A stretch of 31,734 nucleotides of DNA from Paramicrosporidium saccamoebae KSL3 (taxonomy: Eukaryota > Fungi > Cryptomycota): NCBI GenBank assembly GCA_002794465.1, contig MTSL01000125.1, positions 21,648 to 53,381 on the forward strand. Reading direction: 5' to 3'. The notes beneath the pieces were generated by a model. The model worked only from the letters and a program-made list of their open reading frames with translations. It had not been told where the DNA came from and searched no databases. A program made the translations under genes and the position numbers. Below, piece by piece: positions 10,403 through 24,598 of this stretch; position 1 is the first letter of the stretch; every line of letters starts with the position of its first letter.

Positions 10403-12727
10403 CTATGGCATGCGTAGTATAACCGTCTGTCTGATGGGATCAGCAGCGATTAGGTCTAACTCTACGGGCTCGCCCAATATTAGCTGCGACGAGCCAGGAA
10501 TATCACCGTATTGACGTAACGCAAAATCTTTGATAAAGACGTGCAGTTTTCCGGTTTGTGGGCTTCTCTCAACGGGAACGACTGTCACCTTGAGAGGCAT
10601 CCATTCATTGGATTGTCCGCACAAGAGTTGTTCTATGTAGCGAATGGTCCAGAATCGTCTTGATGAGCGTTCCAGCTTTTTCAGATATTGTTCATGGCGA
10701 TACACTGTTGGAATTATTGCTTCTATATATTCGGCAGACTTTGGTTGAGTATTTGCATCTAGTGACAATGAGATTTGATGATGAAGGAGAAGATCAAAAT
10801 AGCGCCGTAGCGGACTCGTAGCCTTGACATATGATGCAAGTCCAAGTCCCCAATGTGGTCGAGGATGGATATCAACTGCGGATGCCTTGAAAAAACTCGC
10901 CAATTTTAGTCGATCATACAAGGAGGCCTCACTGCCGTTTTCTCTGACAATATCTAAAAGACGAAGAAACTCTTCACCTCCCTCTTCGCTTGGATCCAAA
11001 TGGTAGCGGAATGGAACAGAGAGTTTTCTGTCTTGCGCAAACAAAGCTGCCACTCTGCCGGCAATAACCATGCATTCTGTGACAAGAGTGCTACTCCAAT
11101 CGTCTTGGCGATCATCAAGAGTGACTTGCAACGTAGGGCCCATGGGACCTTGATTCCAGACGGTGACTTTGCTACTTGGAATATTACAATTGACAATGCC
11201 CTGTTTTTCGCGGTAACGTAAATGACCACTGATTAGGGAAGAAATATTTTTTAGCACCGTGCCCTCTAGAGTGTCGCTTTGAAGAAGCTCGTTGCACTGG
11301 TCCGGTGTGATCCGCCGGAGATGGGTAACAACGCCTTGACTCACACGGTAATCTGCAATATCTCCATCCGACCCCAATCTTGCAGAAAATGTAATGGTTC
11401 CATTGTATTTTTTCTTTGGATCAAGACTGGCTTTCATGCCAATCTCGAGTGGCAACATAAAGTAGCTATTCTGAGGTAAATACAGCGTACTCGATAGACT
11501 GCGGGCTTGTAGATCAACGACTGAATCGCATGAGATTACACGGGCGGGATCCGCTACGTGCACGTGCAGCCACACCTGGTCACCAACAGTCTGGATGGAA
11601 ATTGCATCATCCACTTCAATTGTACTCTCAGAGTCTATGGCAATGGCAAGATTGTCAAACTGCGTCCTCCCAGAAAAGACTGAAGACTCTTCAGTGTCAA
11701 TTCCGGGAAAGGAAGCTACATCATCAAATGACGTGGTGGCGGCGCTAAACCCGAGTCCACTTTGGTGTTTGGGGACGTCAATTTCTAGCAGGCGGCCCTC
11801 AAGGTTGTATTTTCTGTAAAATGATGTCAAGTCTGCTAGATTGACGAGGGGTTCAATGCCTTGGAGCACATTACTTGCAAACTGAAAGAACGGATTCCAG
11901 GCAGAGTCGTGCCACCCACATATGACTGCTTTGTCTATTAGATTTAAAATTGGTTCAAATTCTGGTTGTGTCAACACGCCATCGGTGGTTTTGGGTTTGG
12001 CCGACTGCAATGCTCTGCGGAACCTGTAAATAATGTTGGTATTCTTTTTCCAATCAGTCTTTCGAAGTTCAAGATCCAGAGCGTCATTTACAAGCTGTTT
12101 CATGTCATTTAAAAGTTTCATGTCATTGCGGCATCTCAAGAAATACGGCCCGGCAGCATATGCACTACTCTGAGCATTTCCATGTGCAGGACACTGAGGT
12201 CGATACATGGAATCGCGACCAAACTTTTCAGTGTACGAGTGGAGATACAAATGAGTGGCGTAGAGTTCCTCGGGCTTTGGAGCATTTCCAAAAACCGAAA
12301 CTGCCAAATCCGATTCGTAAAACAGACTTGCTTCGCCAAGGGGCTTTTGAATAGCGGAAGAGGCTTGCTTGGCCACAGCATCCTCTAAAGACCTATATTG
12401 CTCACTCAAAATACTTCTAGACTTGTCTTCAAATTTCTTTAACACTCGTACAGCGGTGAATCTGTCAATTCCTTCTGCGGGTTTCTCACTGAGAAGCTTT
12501 GAAGTGAAGCGAAGAAAATTGGCCTCTACACTTTTAAAGTGCCCATTGCTCTTGAGAACTTCGATTGGGTTGCTCAAGGGATCCTGTGATTTTTCTGTCG
12601 AGGTCACCAGTCCAAGCACTACATTGCCACCAAATTCCGTAAACTCGACCACATTGCCCCATTGAATAAGTGGCCTAAGCGGTACGGGCTCAGTCAATGC
12701 TCTTATCGAAAGCTGACGAACGAGCAT
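10403..12727 (-). CDS. RNase II/RNB-family exoribonuclease, likely mitochondrial degradosome Dss1-like, 774 aa, intronless
   Basis: AIDSESTIEVDDAISI (catalytic acidic motif), LHVHVADP, STLYLPQ, LVTECMVIAG, HWGLGLASYVKATSPLRRYFDLLLH; N-terminus MLVRQLSIRAL is presequence-like. Confidence 0.85.
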   Translation of the reverse strand: MLVRQLSIRALTEPVPLRPLIQWGNVVEFTEFGGNVVLGLVTSTEKSQDPLSNPIEVLKSNGHFKSVEANFLRFTSKLLSEKPAEGIDRFTAVRVLKKFEDKSRSILSEQYRSLEDAVAKQASSAIQKPLGEASLFYESDLAVSVFGNAPKPEELYATHLYLHSYTEKFGRDSMYRPQCPAHGNAQSSAYAAGPYFLRCRNDMKLLNDMKQLVNDALDLELRKTDWKKNTNIIYRFRRALQSAKPKTTDGVLTQPEFEPILNLIDKAVICGWHDSAWNPFFQFASNVLQGIEPLVNLADLTSFYRKYNLEGRLLEIDVPKHQSGLGFSAATTSFDDVASFPGIDTEESSVFSGRTQFDNLAIAIDSESTIEVDDAISIQTVGDQVWLHVHVADPARVISCDSVVDLQARSLSSTLYLPQNSYFMLPLEIGMKASLDPKKKYNGTITFSARLGSDGDIADYRVSQGVVTHLRRITPDQCNELLQSDTLEGTVLKNISSLISGHLRYREKQGIVNCNIPSSKVTVWNQGPMGPTLQVTLDDRQDDWSSTLVTECMVIAGRVAALFAQDRKLSVPFRYHLDPSEEGGEEFLRLLDIVRENGSEASLYDRLKLASFFKASAVDIHPRPHWGLGLASYVKATSPLRRYFDLLLHHQISLSLDANTQPKSAEYIEAIIPTVYRHEQYLKKLERSSRRFWTIRYIEQLLCGQSNEWMPLKVTVVPVERSPQTGKLHVFIKDFALRQYGDIPGSSQLILGEPVELDLIAADPIRQTVILRMP

Positions 12728-12907: not shown

Positions 12908-15900
12908 TTATTGGTTGGAAGACCAAGTAGGGGATTGTGATGCACTGGATTTAAACACTGGTCCCGACGATCCCTTAGTGCTGGTTCCAGCACCTGTGGT
13001 TCCTTCAGTGTTGGATCCACCAGTGCTTCCGACAGACTTGTGCGTGTATGTTTGCGAAATGAATCGAGGCTTTCCTGTGCTGCTCGTGCTGGTAAAGTCA
13101 CTTTCAGAGCCAGAGTCGTCGGTGGTTGGCACCTCGGCATATCTGGGTCCGGGTCCAACTGAGCTGGCCAGTGATTGGTCTTCTCGGCCCCGCTTTGATT
13201 TAATTTTGGCAACAAGAGCATTCATCTTTGGATATGTGACCAGAGCAATGGTCAGGATCATGGCAAAGAGCACGGCAAGGGATCGGAGTAGGAAGGTCTG
13301 TAACACACTTCCTCGGCGGTCGCCCACAGTGTAGTAGAGGGGCACCAGCATGGCGGAGAGAATGATGAAATCCAATGTCTAAAACAGAATTAAATAATCA
13401 TGTAAAGCGTACACAAAGGAACAGAAACTCGGCTTCGTCATAGGCGGTTTGAAGATTTCGTGCCAGCAGAAAGAGAATTGCACAGATTAGCAGTAAAAGA
13501 AGATTGTAGCCAACAAAGATGTATGTAGGCCAGCTGTAACTTGCAGTGGTAGAGGTGGCACAGGCAATAAAGACATAGGTGTTATCGACGGTACTCTGAG
13601 CAATGACAGCATCGGGTAGTCCTCCATCAGCGCCAAGGTATAATACCAGGCAGATCAATGAGGGGAGCATCACCAAGAAAACTACCAGCAGTAGCTCTCC
13701 ATTGTGCATAACCATTGAAACTCCTCCCGTGTTTATCAGCACACGGAAGATGCGCTGAACCTTGACAACAATGCATCTAAACGTGTCAAATTATGGCGAG
13801 TGTTTTACGCAGTGATTAGACCCATACCGATCATTCCAAGGATAGACTTGAAAATGCAGATGAAATCAGTCTGTACCAGTGTCCACATGATTAGGGACAA
13901 CAGAATTAAAATGACACCCCCGAACATTAACCATAGCCAGAGGAGATTGGTTCGACGCACCACACGACTCCTTGCAAAGGCGGTGAAAAAGATGAGAATC
14001 GCCAATGCAGCAAATATGGCAAGCCCTGCCATAATAGCCACTATGGTTGGCCAGAAGCCATTGCCGAATTGCGTGTTTTCAGGAACCAGAACGGAGACTG
14101 GATAGACAGATCCCGTCTTGAACTGGAGGAGATCGTTGGCGATAAAGGGGCCGGTAATGTTCCAAAAGCCAATCTGCTCCGTGGCGGCATTGGAGCGGTA
14201 CTGGTAAATGTCAAAGTTGGAGCGACGACGATCCGGCTGGGTGACATTAAACTGAACCGGACCGGTAAGCCCGTTCATTGAAACAAGAGACAGGGCTTTA
14301 ACGTATTCAGCAGGTGTAAATGTCTCCAAGTTGCACAGGGAGGGAACTTTGAGTTTGGCACAGCGGGTGGGGTTGAATAGTGAATCTAGGGCGTTGTACA
14401 TGATACCAACGGCATCCTGGACGTAATTAACTTGAGGCTAGCAGATTAAAAGGTACAGCTGGGTTCTTACGTCAACTGGGAGAGTGGAAAAGTCTTCATT
14501 GCCTGTGCAGCGACATTCCTCTGTACGTTCATCAATCTCTTCGGGACATGGGGGAATGGTGTCGGATGCATTGAATCGGCAGCGGAACTCACTCTCCCAA
14601 ATGTCCTGGAATTCGGGGTATGGTGCAGTGGATGGATCGACTTGAGTCATGCATGCTCGGAATTGTCCCAGCTGGCCAATCTGTGGGATAATTCCAATCG
14701 TTCCTTCGACAAAGGAGAGGGGAAAGGTAGATCCAGTTCTAGCAATGGTGTGGTTGAATGTTCCTGGCTCCTTTAGGATCGCCCATCGATCTGAAGCAAT
14801 GAATGTGAGTCTGGTGTTGGTAACGTTTCTGTACAAGAATGACAATGCATTGGCAGCATTGACTTCGTCCACTAAATAATGAGACCTTTTCCCAGATACA
14901 TACTCCATAATACTACAACCGAGGCATCGCTGCCGGCCACACAATCAGCAAAACTGGACAATCCACTGATTGAGCCAGGATTGATGCTGTTGGCGCATGT
15001 TACTTTGATGCGCTGACGTCCAGTTTGGGATAGCAGAGCAGTTCGTCCTGATGTTCCGTAAGAGTCGGTTGTGAAGAGGGCGGCGACAAAGCTCCAGCCA
15101 AACAATCTCATTACCTCTGCCATTGCGCGGGCCTGAAAATTGTCAGGTGGGATTGTTCGAAAGAAGGACGGATATGTAGTCTTGTTTGACAAGCTTACGG
15201 AGGAGGCGCCGAAGGACGTAAATGACAACATTTCTGGTCCATTGAGGTATCCAACAGCAGGGATTTGATCGTTGACAAATGGCCCGACTGTCATAAAGAC
15301 GTTGGATTGCTGCAAAAGGAATGCTTGCTGTGTTGCGGAGCTGACAAAGAAATCAGTATTTTGAATTCGATAGGTCATGAAGGATCTAGGCAAGACTCGG
15401 GAATTACTGTTGAGAATATTCAATTGGCACTTAAAGGCCTCGACATATTGGACACCTGCGAGCCAAGGTTTACCATCTTTGGTCACGGGCAATAGAGCCC
15501 CCAACTGATAACTCGTTGCGTTTGCTTCAATCTCGAGAGACTCAAAGGCAACATCCTCGGCAACAAAATTGGTGGCCTCTGGCGATGGAGTCAACGAAGA
15601 GGAGGGTGCTTCAAAGTTACCAACAGTCACGGTAGAATTGGTCTCTTCTGCCAAATTGATCGTAGTAACCTCTCCCGATCCCCCGGAACCAGAATTACCT
15701 GTAGTATTATTCGCCGATCCAGTTGCGGTGTTGGACCCAGTATTTGATCCAGTATTTGATCCAGTATTGGATCCAGTATTGGATCCAGTGTTGGACCCAG
15801 TTGCGGTGTTCGACCCAGTTGCAACATTAGACCCAGTTGCAGCGTTGGATCCGGCATCTGGTGGAACAGCACCCGATGGGGCGGCGCCTGGAGGAACGGC

Positions 15901-16557
15901 ACCTGATGGTGCAGCGCCTGGAGGAACTACGCCTGTTGGGGCGGCGCCTGGGGGAACTACGCCTGTTGGGGCGGCGCCTGGGGGAACTACGCCTGTTGGA
16001 CCAAAACCAGACGGAGCAGCACCGGGGGGAACAAGACCAGACGGAACAGCACCTGGGGGAACAAAACCAGGCGGAACAGCTCCCGATGGAACAAAACCAG
16101 GTGGAACAGCTCCCGGTAGACCAAAACCGGGCTGAGCAGCACCTGGGTTGGATCCCCCACCCAATAGCGCGTCAAGATCGTCAATGTCGCGCACTGTAAC
16201 CGTTCCAGTCACGGATGGTGGTAGTCCTTGGCCTCCTGACTCAACGGGCTGGATTACACTGGGCGGAAGGCCTTGGCCTGGAGGAGCAATAGGAAGTGCA
16301 TCCCATGCGCTCTCAAGAACCTGCGCAATTGTAGGGGGCGACTGTTTCACTTGCTCTCCCCAAAATACATTGAATATTTTTTGCCAAAAACCGACTTGAT
16401 TGTCCATCTGGCTATCCAAAACTTTGTTTGCGGGAATGGTCAGGTCATTAAGGTAGTCATCATCCAGCTCTTCTGGAATTGGCTGTTCCTTACCAGTGGC
16501 CGCAACCAGGAAGATGAAACAAAAGAGCAATAGCCACTGTAAAAGGGGACGCTCCAT
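12908..16557 (-). CDS. Class C (family 3) GPCR 'A': signal peptide, Gly/Pro-rich repeat extension, Venus-flytrap (ANF receptor) domain, 7TM_3; complement(join(12908..13378,13413..13776,13809..14437,14471..14871,14904..16557)), 1172 aa
   Basis: Four GT-AG introns (32, 33, 32, 34 nt) join five ORFs with consistent phases. VFT motifs LGALLP, LSNKTTYPSFFRTIPPDNFQARAM, FGW, DSYG, IASDRW, YVQDAV, GLTGPVQF; seven hydrophobic segments with C...G...KVQRI, ARNL...DE and YPK. Confidence 0.88.
15720..16135 (-). repeat. Coding tandem repeats in the GPCR A ectodomain: 30-bp units (PPGAAPTGVV / PPGAVPSG / PPGFVP, about 15860..16135) and 12-18 bp units (TGSN, about 15720..15850)
   Basis: Read directly from the translation and DNA, e.g. 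ggaactacgcctgttggggcggcgcctgg x3 and ccagtatt(t/g)gat repeated. Confidence 0.9.
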
Positions 16558-16710
16558 CGCTAGTCGAGAATCACTAGTCACTGCTTTCTAATCACTAATG
16601 GAATAAACGAACACTTGAATCGAGGAACGATTTTTCCCTATTAGGCAGGTACGATAACCATAAAGGGGAAATATGCCACATTGAACTTTGGGATTCCTCC
16701 CAATGCCCTG
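16558..16710. promoter_or_regulatory. Putative bidirectional promoter shared by the two class C GPCR genes
   Basis: Only 153 bp separate the two divergent ATGs (16557 minus, 16711 plus). The function is inferred from this geometry alone. Confidence 0.6.
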
Positions 16711-19528
16711 ATGCTACAATATCTAGTTGTAGTATTCGTGCTGTTTGTCTGGGCGTGCCCAGTGGATTGCCAAACGACAACCAAGAAGCTGGACTATGAC
16801 ATTGATCCCGACTACCAAAACGTGTTTGATAGTCAACAGGGCGCTGTCCCGCCGGCTACATTTGATGCTGCTCCAGAGACATTTGTTTATGGGGGGATAG
16901 TCAGTCTTTCTGACTCTAAGGGAAACCCAACCTTTTCCGGCTACGAAGATGCCTTGGCAATGCAATGCGCAATCAGCGACATTAACAAGATTGCTGCTGT
17001 CCGTGGTCCAAACACTACGTTTTACTACAACATTTTCAACGATCAAGCCAGCGCGCCTGTGGCCATGAGAGCAGCTGTAAATCTGCTCACCGGTGGTGTC
17101 CCGGTTACCGTTGGGCCCTCTGGCTCTGATTCTGGCGCTGCGGTTGCCTCGCTGTTTGCCGGATTCAACTATACTGTGCTGTCAGGTTCCACCACTGCGG
17201 ACGTTTTGTCTAATGAAGCTGTCTATGGATCATATTTCCGCACTATCCCATCCGATGCCAGCGCGGCCCAAGCCATTGGCGACGTAATGATCTACTTTAA
17301 CTGGACTTTGGTGTGTCCTGTGTACTCGGGAGACACTTATGGACTCAGCGGACAGCGACAGTTTACCAGCGTTGCCATCGAGAAGAACATTCTTGTGACA
17401 TGCGGTCGTGTCCTCCCTCCTGGCCAGATTACCGGTATCCAGAGCACCATCAACTGCCTCTCTGACAGTCAAGCATCCGTGGTTCTGCTATGGATGCCCG
17501 AGGCGCAAGCTGCCGACGTCATTGGTGCTTTTTACAATAGTTCTTTGCTCCCAGATATAACCTTTGTCGCTCCTGATTCCTGGGGGGATGTCCAAGACGT
17601 ACAAGCATTCTCTAGAGGAATGTTTGACGTATCCTATTTGGAAGGAGCCATTAGTGTCTTGCCAAAAAGAGGAGATCAATCGGCGTTCCTTGAATGTGTG
17701 TCCGAGATTCGGCCCGAAGATGAAGTTGTTCCGTTTGTTGTTGATTATTGGGAAGCAAGTTTAAGATGCATTCTATCCAACGACACGGGCATTGACCTAT
17801 GTCCAAAGAGAATTCAAGATCGATCCGCCTATCCAGATCTTAAATGTCGCTGCAACGAGGAAGATCAGCTAGGAATGCTAAACTACACCCACAAGGTGAA
17901 CTATATCTACGATGCCGTCTTTGCCGTTTACAATGCGTTTGACCAGCTGAATAATAACTGCACCAGTCTATCTGAAACTCTGGGAGAGGACGTTTGTGGC
18001 CTGGAAGAGCTGACTACGAGCGATCTTCAAAAAATCGTGTCAGTCTCAGAGTTTGAAGGCCTCACGGGCATTGTCGCATTTAACGGAAACGATCCCACCA
18101 GTACCATTGACTGTTTTGTCTCACTGTTTAGCGATTGCGTATGAAATATTCCAGCGACGAAGCGACGGATTCCTGGTGCTAATCGGGAATGATACTCCAA
18201 CAACAAATTTAACCATTGGCAGTTCGTTTGCTCAGCTCAGAATCGATGATGCCTTTGAAGCACTGAACGCGACGATTGACAGCTCCAATTTTTACTTTAA
18301 AAATGGCGAAATTCCCATTTCAGCCATTATTCCCTCGGAGATTACGTTTAGTGAAACTCTAGGAATCGTAGCTCTCGTATTTATTGTCATTGGGCTGCTC
18401 ATTTCATTCTCGCTGTCTATTTACTTTTATGTGAACAGGAACGAAAAGGTGATTAAGAAGACTAGTCCCTTTTTCTCGCAGCTCATGTTGTTTGGGATTA
18501 TCCTCTGTATTTGTTCGCAGATTTTTTGGGACGTTTCTCAGTCCACTTGGACCTGCATTGTCAAGATTTGGCTGTTGGCTATTGGGTTTGGTCTGATCAT
18601 GGGAAATTTACTGGCCAAGACGTATCGCATCTTTAAAATTTTCAACAATGCCCGTGTCACTTCGCTTGTTATTCGAGACGTCGACTTGCTCAAATTTACT
18701 GCCGCCATTATTCTTCTCGAGATTATCCTCTTGTGCTTGTACACGTTTACCACGGGCCTCCCCACACCCGTTGTTATTCAGAGTACCTCGGACAGCTTGC
18801 TGAAGATTGTCAAATGCCAAGTTCCGAGCTCCTTTGTCCAGACTGGTGGTACCATCTGGTTGCTTGGTGTCAACTTTTTACTTGTACTGGCAGCTGTAAT
18901 CATTGCATATCTGACAAGAAACGTCGACTCTGCCTTTAACGAGTCCAGGTACATTGCCTACACTGTGTACATCTATCTGCTTGTGACGATCATTCTGCTA
19001 CCTTTGTACTATACTGCTGGTGACAGTTCCAGTAGTAACAGCCGTCAATTTATCATCAGAACAATTGCAATTCTAGTTTCCATGTTCTTCACACTGGGTG
19101 CCCTTTTCGCACCCAAACTTTATCTTGTGTACAAGACCAAGAAGGGTGAGCGCAAGCTGGCCCAAGCCAGTGCAGACAAGGACCAAGGACGCCGTATTGT
19201 CGATTTCGGCAGTACCACCGCTCAAGGTGGCCCAACGACTGCCTACGCTGAAGGATCAACTGTGGGTGGAGGAGCATTTTCTCGGGCTATTCGTGGAATG
19301 GGAGGCATGACAACTACAACATCATCTGGATCTGAAAACGAGCCCACCACAGTTATGCCCGGTGGTCCGCGTATGGCTCGTAGCGGATCGGGTGGTGTGT
19401 CGGGTACTGGATCCGGAAGTGGAACAGGCACGGGTACGGGAACGGGAACAACTTCCTCACGTCCCACAGGAGTTGACTCTAACGAATATAGCAATCTCAT
19501 CAGCAGTTTGGCTAAACGCTCGAAATAG
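16711..19528 (+). CDS. Class C (family 3) GPCR 'B': signal peptide, Venus-flytrap domain, 7TM_3, Ser/Thr/Gly-rich tail; join(16711..18100,18132..19528), 928 aa
   Basis: One 31-nt intron 18101..18131. TVGPSGS, SGSTTADVLSN, YFRTIPSD, FNWT, GDTYG, APDSW, KVNYIYDAV, FEGLTGIVAF; 7TM with IKKTSPFF, TCIVKIW, LLAKTYRIFKIF, TRNVDSAFNESRYI, LFAPKLY. Confidence 0.92.
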
Positions 19529-19589: not shown

Positions 19590-19771
19590 GTTGTGAGGTA
19601 TGAGGTGTGTGGTGTGTGATGTGTGATGTGTGATGTGCACTATGGGCTGTATGTCGCAGGGTACGGATTACGGATCACACACCAACCATCATTCATCGTA
19701 CATCATGCACCACACATCATATACCATATACCACATATCATACATCATACATCATACACCACACACTACAC
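19590..19771. repeat. G/T-rich simple repeat (GTGTGAT)n followed by a C/A-rich repeat (CATCATA)n, forming a 33-bp imperfect inverted repeat (19605..19637 with 19734..19766)
   Basis: Arm 1 is gtgtgtggtgtgtgatgtgtgatgtgtgatgtg; the reverse complement of arm 2 is gtgtgtggtgtatgatgtatgatgtatgatatg. They match at 29/33 and all four differences are G:T. Confidence 0.9.
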
Positions 19772-19836
19772 TTGGTGGTTGTCATGGTGGCAGAATTTGT
19801 TTTTATATCATGTACAGTAATCTCCACCCAATTACC

Positions 19837-20559
19837 ATGAAAAAGACAAATAGAGCTCTTATCTGCAGAGTCTTTCTTGTAATTCTCGGAATCTCGGCTG
19901 TATTTGGAGCAATTCAAAGTACTTGCAAGGAGAGCGGGGATGTAGCATTGACATTTGATTTCGGTCCTGGTCCATTTACTGGCAAACTCTTGGACATTTT
20001 GTTGGAGAGAAAGATACCGGCTACTTTTCATGTCACCACGGATCTCTTCCGCAATCTAACCCTCACTGAATATGTTCGGAGAGCTCATAATGAGGGACAC
20101 ACTATTGGAATTTTTATACCAGAGTCTCCGGTCTGGGCGGCCATGGACGAGTTCCCGGAAGACGATCCCGTGTTTACCTCTGGTATTATTCAGCAAATTA
20201 CAATTGCATCCAACTGGATCACTTCCATTACAGGAACACAGCCGAGATATATTCGATTCGGAAGCAAGAAGCATATCCCTCTTCAGCTACGCAGAACCAT
20301 TGAACAGCAACTTGGACTCACAGTGACAAAGCCAAAGACGGAAATCCGTGACGAAAGCAACAAGATGGACTCTATCTGGAACTCGCTATCCAAAGGTCTA
20401 CTTAATAGCGATCCCAAAGTGAACTCTTTTATTCTAAGACAGCGCGACACTATGCCAAATTCCGTCGCCAGCGTTGAAAAGATTGTTGAATTTCTAACCG
20501 AAAAAGGATACAACATTGTACCGCTGACCACGTGCGTACCACCACGTCAGCCGAAATAA
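19837..20559 (+). CDS. Secreted NodB/CE4 polysaccharide (chitin) deacetylase homolog, probably catalytically inactive, 240 aa
   Basis: Signal peptide MKKTNRALICRVFLVILGISAVFG; VALTFDFGP, IPATFHV, AHNEGHTIG, KGYNIVPLTTC. The ORF-track start at 19630 lies in the simple repeat. Confidence 0.85.
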   Translation: MKKTNRALICRVFLVILGISAVFGAIQSTCKESGDVALTFDFGPGPFTGKLLDILLERKIPATFHVTTDLFRNLTLTEYVRRAHNEGHTIGIFIPESPVWAAMDEFPEDDPVFTSGIIQQITIASNWITSITGTQPRYIRFGSKKHIPLQLRRTIEQQLGLTVTKPKTEIRDESNKMDSIWNSLSKGLLNSDPKVNSFILRQRDTMPNSVASVEKIVEFLTEKGYNIVPLTTCVPPRQPK

Positions 20560-20982: not shown

Positions 20983-23900
20983 ATGCTTGTCAAATTCGAG
21001 TCGAAAAGCAACCGAGTTAAGGGGGTGGCGTTTCATCCAAAGCGTCCTTGGCTGCTTTCTTCACTTCACAATGGGGCGGTACAGATTTGGGATTACAGAA
21101 TGGGAACCTTGGTGGACCGTTATGACGAGCACGAGGGTAGTGGGCGTGGCAGTGTTATAACTTTTAGGACCGGTTCGTGGCTGTGCCTTTCATCCCACTC
21201 AGCCCATTTTTGTAACTGGTGGGGATGATGGAAAGATTCGCGTGTTCAATTATCAACAGCGACGTTGTCTTTTCACCCTCACTGGCCACATGGATTACAT
21301 TCGCACAGTCTTTTTCCACAACGAGGCGCCATGGATTGTGAGTTCTTCTGACGACCAAACGATTCGCGTGTGGAATTGGCAGTCTCGTGCATGTTTAGCG
21401 GTCCTTACAGGACATAGTCACTATGTCATGTGCGCCCAATTCCACCCTTCGGAGGATATGATTGTGAGTGCTTCCCTTGACCAAACCATTCGTGTCTGGG
21501 ACATTGGGTCTCTTCGTCGCAAGCACTCATCTCCGGCCACAAGTCCATACGATGACCATGGAGCGCGGGTTCCCAGTCCGAGGGCCAGTCAAATTGACTT
21601 GTTTGGTGCGCCCGAAGGCCAGGTCAAGTTTGTCTTGGAGGGCCATGACCGCGGAGTCAACTGGGTCCAGTTCCATCCATCCAAGCCAATCATTGTCTCT
21701 GGATCTGACGACCGGTCTGTCAAGCTGTGGCGCTACAATGAGACTCGTGCCTGGGAGACTGACACTTTCCGCGGCCACTTTAACAACATTTCGTGTGTCA
21801 TGTTCCATGCTCAGTCCGACTTGATTATCAGCAATTCTGAGGACAAGTCGATTCGGATTTGGGATTACACGAAGCGTGGATCCCAGCCGATTGTGCAGCG
21901 TCGCGAATCGGATCGCTTTTGGATTCTCGCCGGACATCCATCGCTCAACCTCATTGCTGCTGGCCATGACAATGGTCTGATGGTATTTAAGCTGGAACAT
22001 GAGCGTCCCTCCTATTGCGTCTTTGAAGAGAATCAGCTCTTTGTTCTCCGTGACCGAACAGTCGTTTCTGTCGACTTGAATGGCGATGAACGAGGGGCAG
22101 AAAACTCGCAAAGTCCAATTATCAATTTGGATCACAAAGTCACCCCGCCTAGCTGTTTGGTGCACAGTGTTGCAGACAATTCCTTGTTACTGTCGTCTCG
22201 AGGAGAGGCTGCCTCCTATGAATTGTTCTCAGCTCGGGGCGGCTCAAGCGACTCGTTGCGAAAGGGACCAGGCGAATCGGCCGTCTTTGTCGCTCGTAAT
22301 CGGTTTGCAGTGTTGGACGAACAGCAAGTACATATCAAAGCCCTAGATAACACTGTTTACAAAACTATTGCATGCGAAAATGCTGAGCGAATTCTGTCCT
22401 GTCCTCCTGGGTCTTTCCTTCTCGTCTCCAAAGAGGATGTGCGGCTTTATGATATCCAGCAGGACAAATTTGTCGCGGAATCCAAATTGGCTGACATTAA
22501 ATACTGCGTCTGGTCATCCGATTCCACCAGCTTAGCCTTGTTTGGCTCCCATGTTCTCTATGTTGTTGACCGTCGCACGCTGGCAGTCAAGTCTACTGTT
22601 CGGGACACGATCAACATCAAGTCTGCTGTTTGGGATGCTCGCGGAATCCTTTTTTTCACCAACTCTCACCATCTCAAATATTTGCTACCTAATGGCGATG
22701 TTGGCGTGGTTTGCACTGTTCAGGCCCCTCTCTATCTCATCCGCGTCAAGGGAGACACTATTGCAGCTCTGGATAGATCCTGTGCTGTGCATCATTTTAA
22801 AATTGATCCTACAGAATTCCTGTTCAAGCTTGCCCTTTGGCAAGGTGACCAGCCCACTATTTTGCACATGATTGAGCACGGTAACTTGATGGGTCAGTCC
22901 ATCATTTCCTATCTTCGACAGAATGGATATGCAGAAATTGCCCTCGGCTTTGTTCAAGAGCCCATTACCCGCTTTGAGCTTGGAATAGAGTGCTGCGACT
23001 TGGAGTGTGCCTACGAGGCCGCGGAAAAGATTGAGAGCGACGACATGTGGAATCGTCTCGCTGACGAGGCAATGATGATTGGAAACTTTATCCTGGCTGA
23101 AAAGTGTCTCCGTCGGGTAGGCAACCACAGTCGCCTGAGTTTCTTGCATCTTCTCACTGGAAACGTGCCCAAGCTTCAGAGTGTAACGGATGAGGTGCGA
23201 GTAAAGGGCGACTTTAATACGCGCATTCAGAATGACCTGTTCCTTGGAGATAATGTGGATCTCGCCAATGCCCTTGTTGATGCCAAAGTTCCATCGTTGG
23301 CTTATCTGGCCTGTAAAAGCTCTGGACTAGAAATTGAGGGCCAGGACATTTTGGATCGCTTCTGTCGCGACAAGAATAATGCCCATTCTCTCCCAGTTGG
23401 ACGAATTGCCCAAGTCGAGCCCCTGTTCCGCCAGTCAGAAGCATGGCCTTTGAGCGCGGATCCGGTAAAGAACAAGATTGCCTTGACCCGCAAGACACCC
23501 ATTTCCCGCAACCCCACCGCCGCCAATGACGATTTGGGCGAGTTGTTGCAAACGGCAGCCTTCCCTGCCAGTGGCGGGTGGGATCTTGAAGAGACTGGCT
23601 TGGAATTGGAATTGGACGATATTCCATCGCCTAGTGCCGATGCCGACTTTTCTAATGTTGTCGAGGATGGGTCGTGGCCGCAACCTGGGAACGCAAATAG
23701 GGACCTGCTGTCCATGGCCAGTTCTATTCCGTACCACTATTTGGCCACTGGTCAAGTAGAGAGTGCCCTTTTATTGATGAAGGAGCAATGTGGAATTGTC
23801 AACTTTGCCCCGCTCGAGTCAATGGTAATGAGATGTCTTCAGGGCAGTTCGGTGCAGATTGAGGGATTTACTCAGATCAACTTGAGCTCTATATGCCAGA

Positions 23901-24598
23901 CTGAAAAAGAGGGTCATGCGGCATCCAGACCCCGACCAGTCTTTACCTTTGAGCTGATGAAGCAGGAATTTGACGCTGCCTTGCAATTAACAACCACTGG
24001 CAAGTTTTCTGAAGCAGTCAAGCTGTTTGAAAATGTTCTCCTGTCATGCCTCTTTACGGTCGTCTCTACAGATGAAGAGGATGAGTTTTTAGAAATTAAG
24101 TCAAAGTGTCGCGAATATCTTTTGGGTCTTCGCATGGAGCACTTGAGAAAGGAGCTTCTTGGCACCGACGAGGCTCGCTCCTTGGCTCTTGCGTGCTATT
24201 TTGCCAGCTGCGATCTACGCAATGACCACCGAATTCTAGCGCTTCGATCGGCACTGACCCAGGCTTACAAGCAGCAGTGCATTGCATTGTCATGTACGCT
24301 CGCTAAACGACTACTCCAGTGCTCTCCACCCGAGGCCACTGCGCTCCAGGCCAGAAAGATTATTGGACTCGGCGAACGATTACCGCTTAACCACGCCGAT
24401 CCAATTGCCATTAGTTTGGGCGATGACAGCGCTCCCATAATCATTGACGCGAGAGACATTGTTCCTCTGGATTCAAAATACATTGAATGTCCGTTCTGTC
24501 AGGCAAAGTACCGCACCGAATACCATGCAAGTGTCTGTACCGTATGTAATGTTGCCTCTATCGGGGCAGATGGAACTGGACTTGTTTGCTGCGAATGA
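20983..24598 (+). CDS. COPA: Coatomer subunit alpha; join(20983..21136,21168..24598), 1194 aa
   Basis: [23 protein letters not shown]; intron 21137..21167 (31 nt) restores HEGPVRG; WD40 repeats, [19 protein letters not shown]-terminal CPFC...CTVC. Confidence 0.97.

Follow-up and report, generated by a model that had tools for sequence, protein, structure and literature searches.

A head-to-head pair of class C G-protein-coupled receptor genes in Paramicrosporidium saccamoebae and the asymmetry of their ligand pockets

We have analyzed a stretch of 31,734 nucleotides from the cryptomycotan fungus Paramicrosporidium saccamoebae KSL3 (contig MTSL01000125.1 of assembly GCA_002794465.1, positions 21,648 to 53,381 of the forward strand), which is referred to here as the window and whose own numbering is used throughout. 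Between 12.9 and 19.5 kb, the window contains 2 genes on opposite strands, designated A and B, that encode G-protein-coupled receptors (GPCRs) of class C, the Glutamate family, as judged from the presence of ANF_receptor and 7tm_3 domains in both. The initiator ATGs of the 2 genes are 153 bp apart, and the region between them (16558..16710 in the gene models) is presumed to be a bidirectional promoter. A first-pass annotation of this DNA had proposed that B keeps the residues with which the animal receptor mGluR1 binds its ligand, and that A, having lost key ones, is a non-binding or differently binding partner. As far as can be judged from comparison of sequences, the pocket asymmetry is real for P. 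saccamoebae and its nearest relatives, but the A and B families as wholes are not characterized by it.

Gene models and domain content of A and B

The gene models were built from changes of reading frame, GT..AG boundaries and the colinearity of A with B. Gene A (1172 aa) occupies 12908..16557 on the minus strand in 5 exons (16557-14904, 14871-14471, 14437-13809, 13776-13413 and 13378-12908, the last including the stop codon), which are separated by introns of 32, 33, 32 and 34 nt. The frame is kept throughout its spliced coding sequence, which is colinear with B as well as with class C models. Gene B (928 aa) occupies 16711..19528 on the plus strand, where exons 16711-18100 and 18132-19528 flank a single intron of 31 nt (18101-18131). 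All 5 introns are 31-34 nt in length, with donors of the form GTA(T/A/C)G.. and acceptors of the form (T)TAG; the intron at 14470-14438 of A is in frame and holds a stop codon.

The Venus-flytrap (VFT) ligand-binding domain of B comprises residues 58-472 (16882..18157, plus strand), as supported by HMMER comparison with mGluR4, an AlphaFold2 model and Foldseek, and its seven-transmembrane (7TM) domain comprises residues 539-797 (18356..19132, plus strand; Pfam 7tm_3). The corresponding domains of A are residues 350-765 (14198..15510, minus strand) and 813-1072 (13211..14056, minus strand; Pfam 7tm_3). ANF_receptor was matched nearly full-length in both proteins (2e-33 in A, 3e-39 in B), and 7tm_3 was matched at 7e-28 in A (98 bits; profile positions 7-251 of 251) and at 8e-51 in B (174 bits; positions 2-251 of 251). 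No Pfam match to the cysteine-rich domain NCD3G (PF07562), which all of the animal matches carry, was observed in A, B or 10 fungal relatives. The 2 proteins are 30% identical to each other across 765 residues.

Ahead of its ligand-binding domain, A has an N-terminal extension of ~330 aa, the translation of which includes a low-complexity part (~15673..16284, minus strand) made up of P/G/A/V (GAVPPG-like) repeats and then TGSN repeats. Mucin-like N-termini of 200-450 aa are present also in A-type orthologues (P0014-16 and P0027; database proteins are numbered with a P), where a conserved "TTVDL..TNST.TV" stretch, rich in N-glycosylation sites, comes next; no such N-termini are seen in B-types. 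That A might be a pseudogene or decaying copy was ruled out by the intact reading frame over 5 exons, the full-length Pfam domains and the 58-72% identity to orthologues.

The predicted B protein is 96% identical to an NCBI entry, [quoted passage not shown] (P0001, 906 aa), from which it differs only around the intron. The public model appears to be mis-spliced, in that the 31-nt intron is not used and ~22 residues of the last strands of the ligand-binding domain are absent. Our 18100/18132 junction is backed by homology to A (FDIYQYRS), mGluR4 (YDIYQY) and the orthologue from relative L006 (INYEIFQRRSNG). For protein A, there was no P. saccamoebae entry among the matches of a protein search with A as query, and A may be unannotated or poorly modelled in the public record.

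Residues of the ligand pockets and cytoplasmic faces

In mGluR1, S165, T188, D208, Y236 and D318 are the 5 proximal residues that contact the alpha-amino acid; Ser165, the most conserved of them, binds the carboxylate, and Thr188, Asp208, Tyr236 and Asp318 bind the amine (PMC2680970, citing Acher and Bertrand 2005). Positions R78 and K409 lie outside these 5 contacts and determine side-chain selectivity. In B (plus strand), the 5 contacts correspond to S139 (in GPSGSD, codon 17125-17127), T162 (GSTTAD, 17194-17196), D182 (IPSD, 17254-17256), Y210 (DTYG, 17338-17340) and D289 (APDSW, 17575-17577), and K409 corresponds to K395 (HKVNYIYDAV, 17893-17895), with D80 at the position of R78 (GYEDALAM, 16948-16950). 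In A (minus strand), the equivalents of the 5 contacts are N429 (GPFVND, 15273-15271), S452 (SFGASSV), D472 (IPPD), Y500 (DSYG) and D579 (ASDRW), with Q687 at K409 (PQVNYVQDAV, right after the 33-nt intron) and Y371 at R78 (GVQYVEAF). When introns were removed, every motif quoted in the first-pass annotation was present where it had been placed: the 6 mGluR1 equivalents kept by B together with its replacement of R78 by D, and the N, S, Q and Y that A has at S165, T188, K409 and R78 while keeping D208, Y236 and D318.

The manual alignment to mGluR1 from which these equivalences were first drawn agrees with alignments of 2 further kinds and, for B, with a structural model. HMMER alignment of B over mGluR4 placed GPSGSD against GASGSS (mGluR4 S159), SGSTTAD against SYASTAP (T182), IPSD against VPSD, DTYG against GSYG, APDSWG against GSDSWG, and KVNYIYDAV against KVQFVIDAV. 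We take mGluR4 S159 and T182 (chain numbering corrected by 32) to be the known agonist-binding Ser and Thr. The register of A in its alignments to mGluR2 and CaSR was that of B. In a MAFFT alignment of 58 sequences, which included animal mGluR-like and CaSR-like, chytrid and Rozella receptors, the pocket residues share columns, and both D80 of B and Y371 of A fall in the column of mGluR R78 and CaSR W70. For the ligand-binding domain of B, the AlphaFold2 model (pLDDT 89.3, pTM 0.87) found its best Foldseek matches in the ectodomains of CaSR (5fbk) and of mGluR1 (1ewk), 2, 3 and 5, with TM-scores of ~0.7. All 7 pocket residues are located at strand ends or helix starts of this model, where the cleft of the fold lies, placement in the cleft having been judged by secondary-structure position and by sequence and profile alignment. 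A model of the A ligand-binding domain, made without an alignment, was unusable (pLDDT 34).

We scored the 5-residue signature with Ser accepted at T188 and Glu accepted at D318. On this basis, B has the complete amino-acid signature, and that of A is incomplete (4 of 5), with a departure only at S165. Ser at the T188 position is the state observed in CaSR-like, chytrid and Rozella receptors (SYASS in the 58-sequence alignment), and S452 of A is therefore the ancestral fungal state and not a loss. The proposal that A has lost key residues thus holds for S165 but not for T188, and since R78 and K409 are outside the core, one core residue is missing. The glutamate-type distal basic pair, R78 with K409, is incomplete in B (D80/K395) and absent from A (Y371/Q687).

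On the cytoplasmic side, B carries KTYRI (18617-18631, plus strand) and TRNVDSAFNESRY (18914-18952, plus strand), and the counterparts in A are KVQRI (13763-13749, minus strand) and ARNLQTAYDEAEF (13463-13425, minus strand). The A motifs had been described as degenerate. They are indeed divergent, but A retains the Lys and Glu of the intracellular lock, K3.50 and the Glu of FNE (E6.35), as well as the Arg of KxxRI. Cytoplasmic motifs differ among A-type proteins, with K3.50 and E6.35 kept. Among 10 B-types, FGLIMGNLLAKTYRIFKIFNNARVT is identical in 9, as is LTRNVDSAFNES, for which a single N-to-K change was seen in L005_B3. The motifs of intracellular loop 2 and transmembrane segment 6 are thus identical in 9/10 B-types and those of intracellular loop 1 nearly so; NRxEKVIKKTSP differs at few positions. 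The B motifs resemble those of other fungal class C receptors.

The A/B pair in related organisms

Relatives of A and B were found by protein search in Logan, JGI and ENA assemblies, as fragments from uncultured organisms (numbered with an L). The contigs were fetched, tblastn matches on them were stitched into pseudo-proteins, and these were assigned as A-type or B-type by summed score. Every GPCR of the relatives classified cleanly as one or the other. Head-to-head pairs, always consisting of one A-type and one B-type gene 138-214 bp apart, were observed in L002, L004, L005, L006/7, L008/9 and the distant L011. In L011 (5100-10448), the B-like protein P0047 is 35-37% identical to B, and the KTYRI and NES motifs persist in it. 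At the level of genomic linkage, then, 2 distinct paralogous subunits have been inherited together in 6 or more related contigs. Neither a profile-based scan nor a degenerate AKTYRIFKIFNNA DNA pattern revealed further pairs in the metagenome contigs.

The neighbourhood of the pairs is as in the window, in the order RNB/Trm11, A/B, polysaccharide deacetylase, COPI-alpha. Microsynteny of RNB, A/B, the deacetylase and COPI-alpha was seen, complete or in part, in L002, L004-L008, L010, L011 and L014, and the loci that take part in it beside A and B in the window are located at 10403-12727, 19630-20559 and 21242-24598. The adjacency of B and COPI-alpha survives even in the metchnikovellid Amphiamblys.

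A tandem of 2 A/B pairs is present in each of L002, L004 and L005. The 2 B copies came out as sisters in a crude neighbour-joining tree, as did the 2 A copies, which shows that A and B were duplicated together, as a unit. Between the A and B clades, the same crude tree places sequences from outside Paramicrosporidium (an Amphiamblys protein, a transcriptome protein and several environmental ones), and the split between A and B is therefore old. The conserved head-to-head synteny and the duplication as a unit lend strong independent support, at the level of genomic linkage, to the earlier suggestion that A is a partner of B. The presumed shared promoters of the duplicated pairs (spacers L002 8993-9161 and 15483-15696, L004 3312-3481 and 9848-10000, and L005 9530-9696 and 16030-16243) have in common a palindromic core, CTTCC-N6-7-GGAAATATGG, with TATATTAAT after it, and a similar CTGCCTAATAGGGAAAAAT is present in the window spacer.

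The pocket signatures of the pairs, given here in the order S165/T188/D208/Y236/D318, are as follows. The P. saccamoebae pair reads S T D Y D in B and N S D Y D in A, and the L006 and L008 pairs both read S T D Y D in the B-type and D S D Y D in the A-type. In the first of the tandem pairs, the B-types read A T D C T (L002), A T D Y A (L004) and A T D L A (L005), and their A-type partners N S D Y D, N S D Y D and N A D Y D, respectively. In the second pairs, the B-types read A T D Y A (L002), A A D Y A (L004) and A T D Y S (L005), and the A-type paralogue has the complete signature, S-S-D-Y-D, in all three. Thus, as read from these sequences, the asymmetry is reversed in the second pair of this distant clade.

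Among 7 close B orthologues (L001/P0002, L006/P0044, L008/P0043, P0040-42 and P0045), S165, D208 and D318 are kept in all; T188 is replaced by S in P0002 and Y236 by F in P0041. All 5 core residues occur together in B and in 5 of the 7, though the VFT domains of these orthologues are only ~55-62% identical to that of B. In A-types, D208, Y236 and D318 are almost invariant, and the S165 position is N, D, Y or S (Tyr in the L013 clade); the A equivalents of S164, S165, S186 and K409 differ even between close orthologues. Both pockets of the L011 pair are degenerate, with most pocket residues gone, and the A partner is without D208, Y236 and D318. Chytrid relatives (Quaeritorhiza and Borealophlyctis) have every residue of the mGluR-like set, R78 and K409 among them, and Rozella has the 5 core residues and K409, its R78 region being unaligned. 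Because these relatives carry the set, we regard it as ancestral, B as conservative and A as derived. The split into a binder and a non-binder that had been envisaged is consequently borne out in part: B is canonical and A derived here and in the closest relatives, but the distant B-types have lost S165 and D318, and one A paralogue is complete.

Other identifiable genes of the window, besides the Trm11-like methyltransferase, RNase II (RNB), polysaccharide deacetylase and COPI-alpha genes, are those for an acyl-CoA dehydrogenase, GDP-mannose pyrophosphorylase, GT64 and a UBX protein. That the window might come from a prokaryote or a virus was ruled out by the GT..AG introns, the eukaryotic housekeeping neighbours and the 96% match to a P. 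saccamoebae protein.

Possible roles of A and B

The reading that we prefer, to which we would assign a probability of about 0.45, is that A and B are the 2 protomers of a Rozellomycota class C heterodimer with divided labour, encoded by divergent genes that would share a short promoter. A functional partnership between A and B best accounts for the co-duplicated divergent arrangement of the genes and for the reciprocal rate asymmetry described below. We infer as likely the co-expression of the 2 genes and the physical heterodimerization of their products, and likewise the ligand class and the coupling protomer as follows. B would be the canonical protomer, in which the contacts for an alpha-amino acid remain in their ancestral form and the cytoplasmic face hardly varies. 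It is favored as a sensor of L-amino acids because the only complete amino-acid signature in P. saccamoebae is its own; in this species, B would most likely bind an L-alpha-amino acid, and it would most likely be the protomer that activates the G protein. The ligand of B is probably not glutamate, since at R78, where all glutamate-type pockets have the Arg that secures the distal carboxylate, B has Asp; an amino acid whose side chain is neutral or basic seems likelier. The first-pass annotation had raised this same doubt, which is strengthened by the orthologue sequences: the R78 position is acidic in 6 of the 7 close B orthologues (Asp in 5, Glu in P0045), and Ser in P0044/L006. A would be the derived protomer, in which Asn or Asp takes the place of the carboxylate-binding Ser, the R78 position is aromatic and the Lys at K409 is missing; its cytoplasmic face is divergent, and it has the mucin-like N-terminal extension. 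A may serve as an allosteric subunit or a co-receptor, or its ligand may be another one that is possibly cationic; clear purifying selection argues that it is a working partner. The parasite is without several amino-acid pathways (PMC5701793), and a sensor for amino acids would make sense for that reason. That B binds and A does not is plausible for P. saccamoebae and its closest relatives only.

The rate asymmetry was observed when identities to the P. saccamoebae proteins were compared for A and B over the same species pairs (8 comparisons). Identity in the ligand-binding domain was 58-72% for A (49.7% in one comparison) versus 42-62% for B, with A above B by 10-17 points in 7 of the 8 and by 3 points in L004 pair 2 (49.7% versus 46.8%). 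In the 7TM domain, identity was 52-63% for A versus 68-84% for B, which was ahead by 11-22 points. For L006 and L008, the differences between A and B amounted to 3-4 and 5.5-5.7 standard errors (z-scores). The ligand-binding domain is thus better conserved in A and the 7TM domain in B, which would fit a division into a binding and a coupling subunit; in this species, however, it is B that has the intact canonical pocket and the canonical cytoplasmic face alike.

Several of our observations weigh against the heterodimer with B as its sensor. The slower evolution of the A ligand-binding domain would not be expected of a silent partner, and pocket positions (n=14; 10,000 resamplings) did not differ significantly in conservation from the remainder of the ligand-binding domain in either family; the difference came closest to significance in the close clade of A (0.55 for the pocket versus 0.73 for the background, one-sided ~0.05, from 3 sequences). 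The canonical B pocket is not family-wide, as the B-types of L002, L004 and L005 have Ala at S165 and Ala, Thr or Ser at D318, and the ligand-binding domain of the L011 B-type no longer matches Pfam ANF_receptor. A-type genes without an adjacent B are found in L003 (3404-6250, by Rpb5/Rad51) and L013 (5282-8288, by Utp11), and a B-like gene stands alone, by COPI-alpha, in Amphiamblys (L010). Also, no C-terminal coiled coil, RSRR-type retention signal or other heterodimerization device was evident in the proteins by eye, no predictor having been run; by the same inspection, the C-terminal tails of A and B are of low complexity and rich in Ser, Thr and Gly.

The main rival to our preferred reading accepts the dimer and reverses the roles, in a GABAB-like manner: A would sense a non-standard ligand (an amine, a polyamine or a cation) in a pocket rich in Asp/Asn and aromatic residues, and B would couple, its VFT domain being free to drift. 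This arrangement, which we consider rather unlikely as it stands, fits the rates and the distant pairs better than does a sensing B, and fits the pockets of this species less well. The ligand-binding domain of A is the more conserved in 8/8 comparisons and the 7TM domain of B is more conserved than that of A; the cytoplasmic motifs of B are almost invariant; B-type pockets decay in L002, L004, L005, L011 and Amphiamblys as D208, Y236 and D318 stay nearly invariant in A-types; and the second-pair A paralogue of L002, L004 and L005 has the full signature. Yet the complete canonical signature is that of B in P. saccamoebae and its closest relatives, the A equivalents of S164, S165, S186 and K409 are unstable between close orthologues, and D208, Y236 and D318 are gone from the A partner of the L011 pair.

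Two further readings dispense with the divided dimer or with the amino acid. A and B might form independent homodimers, each with its own ligand, and owe their adjacency to an inverted duplication and a shared promoter region. Complete ligand-binding and 7TM domains in each protein, the homodimeric habit of mGluR and CaSR, and the existence of single genes of the A-type (in L003 and L013) and of a B-like one (in Amphiamblys L010) would all suit independent receptors. We nevertheless think this reading improbable, as the arrangement has been retained despite 30% identity between A and B and is present as far away as L011, duplication has been of the A+B unit rather than gene by gene, and the reciprocal asymmetry of domain rates is hard to account for on this basis. 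Least probable of all, in our estimation, is that neither VFT domain binds an amino acid, in which case the B residues would be inherited structure in a receptor that is constitutively active or that responds to something else, such as ions, pH or a metabolite of the host nucleus, for example a nucleoside or polyamine. Repeated loss of the signature in a family whose genes are kept, the lack of significantly greater conservation in the pocket than in the background, and the ability of the CaSR fold and core residues to serve cation sensing are all consistent with such a receptor; against it, the 5 core residues are intact in B and in 5/7 close orthologues, and the others have one conservative change each. 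Beyond the present species, one might envisage an ancient class C heterodimer of the Rozellomycota or early microsporidian lineage, with an origin independent of animal GABAB and T1R, encoded by a bidirectional cassette that duplicates as a unit, in which B is a fixed coupler, the sensing role or ligand has shifted between the A and B VFT domains, and host amino acids or amines are sensed. This wider scheme is a doubtful one at present, if less so than the rivals just discussed.

Comparison with known systems places the 2 receptors near, and not within, several of them. Like GABAB, A and B are class C receptors without a cysteine-rich domain, with 2 paralogous subunits of unequal ligand pockets, one better conserved in the 7TM domain and cytoplasmic face and the other in the ligand-binding domain. 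Unlike GABAB, they are nearer to CaSR and mGluR in sequence and predicted fold, the intact pocket and canonical cytoplasmic face are in the same subunit (B) in P. saccamoebae, the genes are adjacent and divergent, and the heterodimer is a predicted one. The T1R receptors (T1R1/T1R3 and T1R2/T1R3), which were among the protein matches and whose heterodimer partners differ in what they bind, share with A and B an amino-acid-type signature, with Ser at both S165 and T188 in some members; they have the cysteine-rich domain that A and B lack, and form separate clades in the crude tree, with no orthology. The mGluR and CaSR receptors, which are homodimers, and of which CaSR uses the same fold and core residues for cation sensing, gave the best matches in sequence (E ~1e-37) as well as in structure. 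The likeness to them includes, besides the 6 pocket equivalents of B, the resemblance of KTYRI and FNES to mGluR KTNRI and FNEAK. They differ from A and B in having NCD3G, in having unpaired genes, in the R78 position (Asp in B and Tyr in A, so that neither has a glutamate-type distal site) and in W6.50, which is not kept, as read from the HMMER alignment over mGluR4. Dictyostelium GABAB-like (Grl) receptors are likewise non-animal class C receptors without a cysteine-rich domain, from a different lineage; some are reportedly responsive to GABA or glutamate.

The closest likeness is to fungal receptors of the "Glutamate class" (Class 16), described in surveys of chytrids, Blastocladiomycota and Rozella (PMC12842992, citing Krishnan et al. 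2012). Relatives in Quaeritorhiza, Borealophlyctis, Rozella and Amphiamblys have ANF_receptor and 7tm_3 without the cysteine-rich domain and are 30-34% identical to B. These surveys differ from the present analysis in that they count genes, and in the literature that we searched, we found no paired A/B arrangement, pocket asymmetry or heterodimer of fungal class C GPCRs, and no paper on Paramicrosporidium GPCRs. The P. saccamoebae genome paper (PMC5701793) makes no mention of receptors or G proteins. As proteins, A and B are ordinary members of the fungal Glutamate class; their novelty lies in the conserved A/B cassette that they form and in the way in which its asymmetry is distributed.

Class C dimers built of unequal protomers, such as GABAB, T1R and mGlu2/4, are a central theme of GPCR pharmacology, and to our knowledge all of the cases that have been studied are from animals. 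The relatives described here constitute a natural series of variants, in some of which the signature is confined to B, in some to A, and in others missing from both, that could be used to test which residues make a VFT domain a sensor of amino acids and which protomer must couple. G-alpha genes, whose products could be signalling partners of the proposed receptor, reportedly number 2 in short-branch Microsporidia and 1 in metchnikovellids, and are absent from derived Microsporidia (PMC13393502). In a parasite that is without several amino-acid pathways, and in a lineage with few receptors and 2 G-alpha genes, the A/B pair is for these reasons a leading candidate for host sensing.

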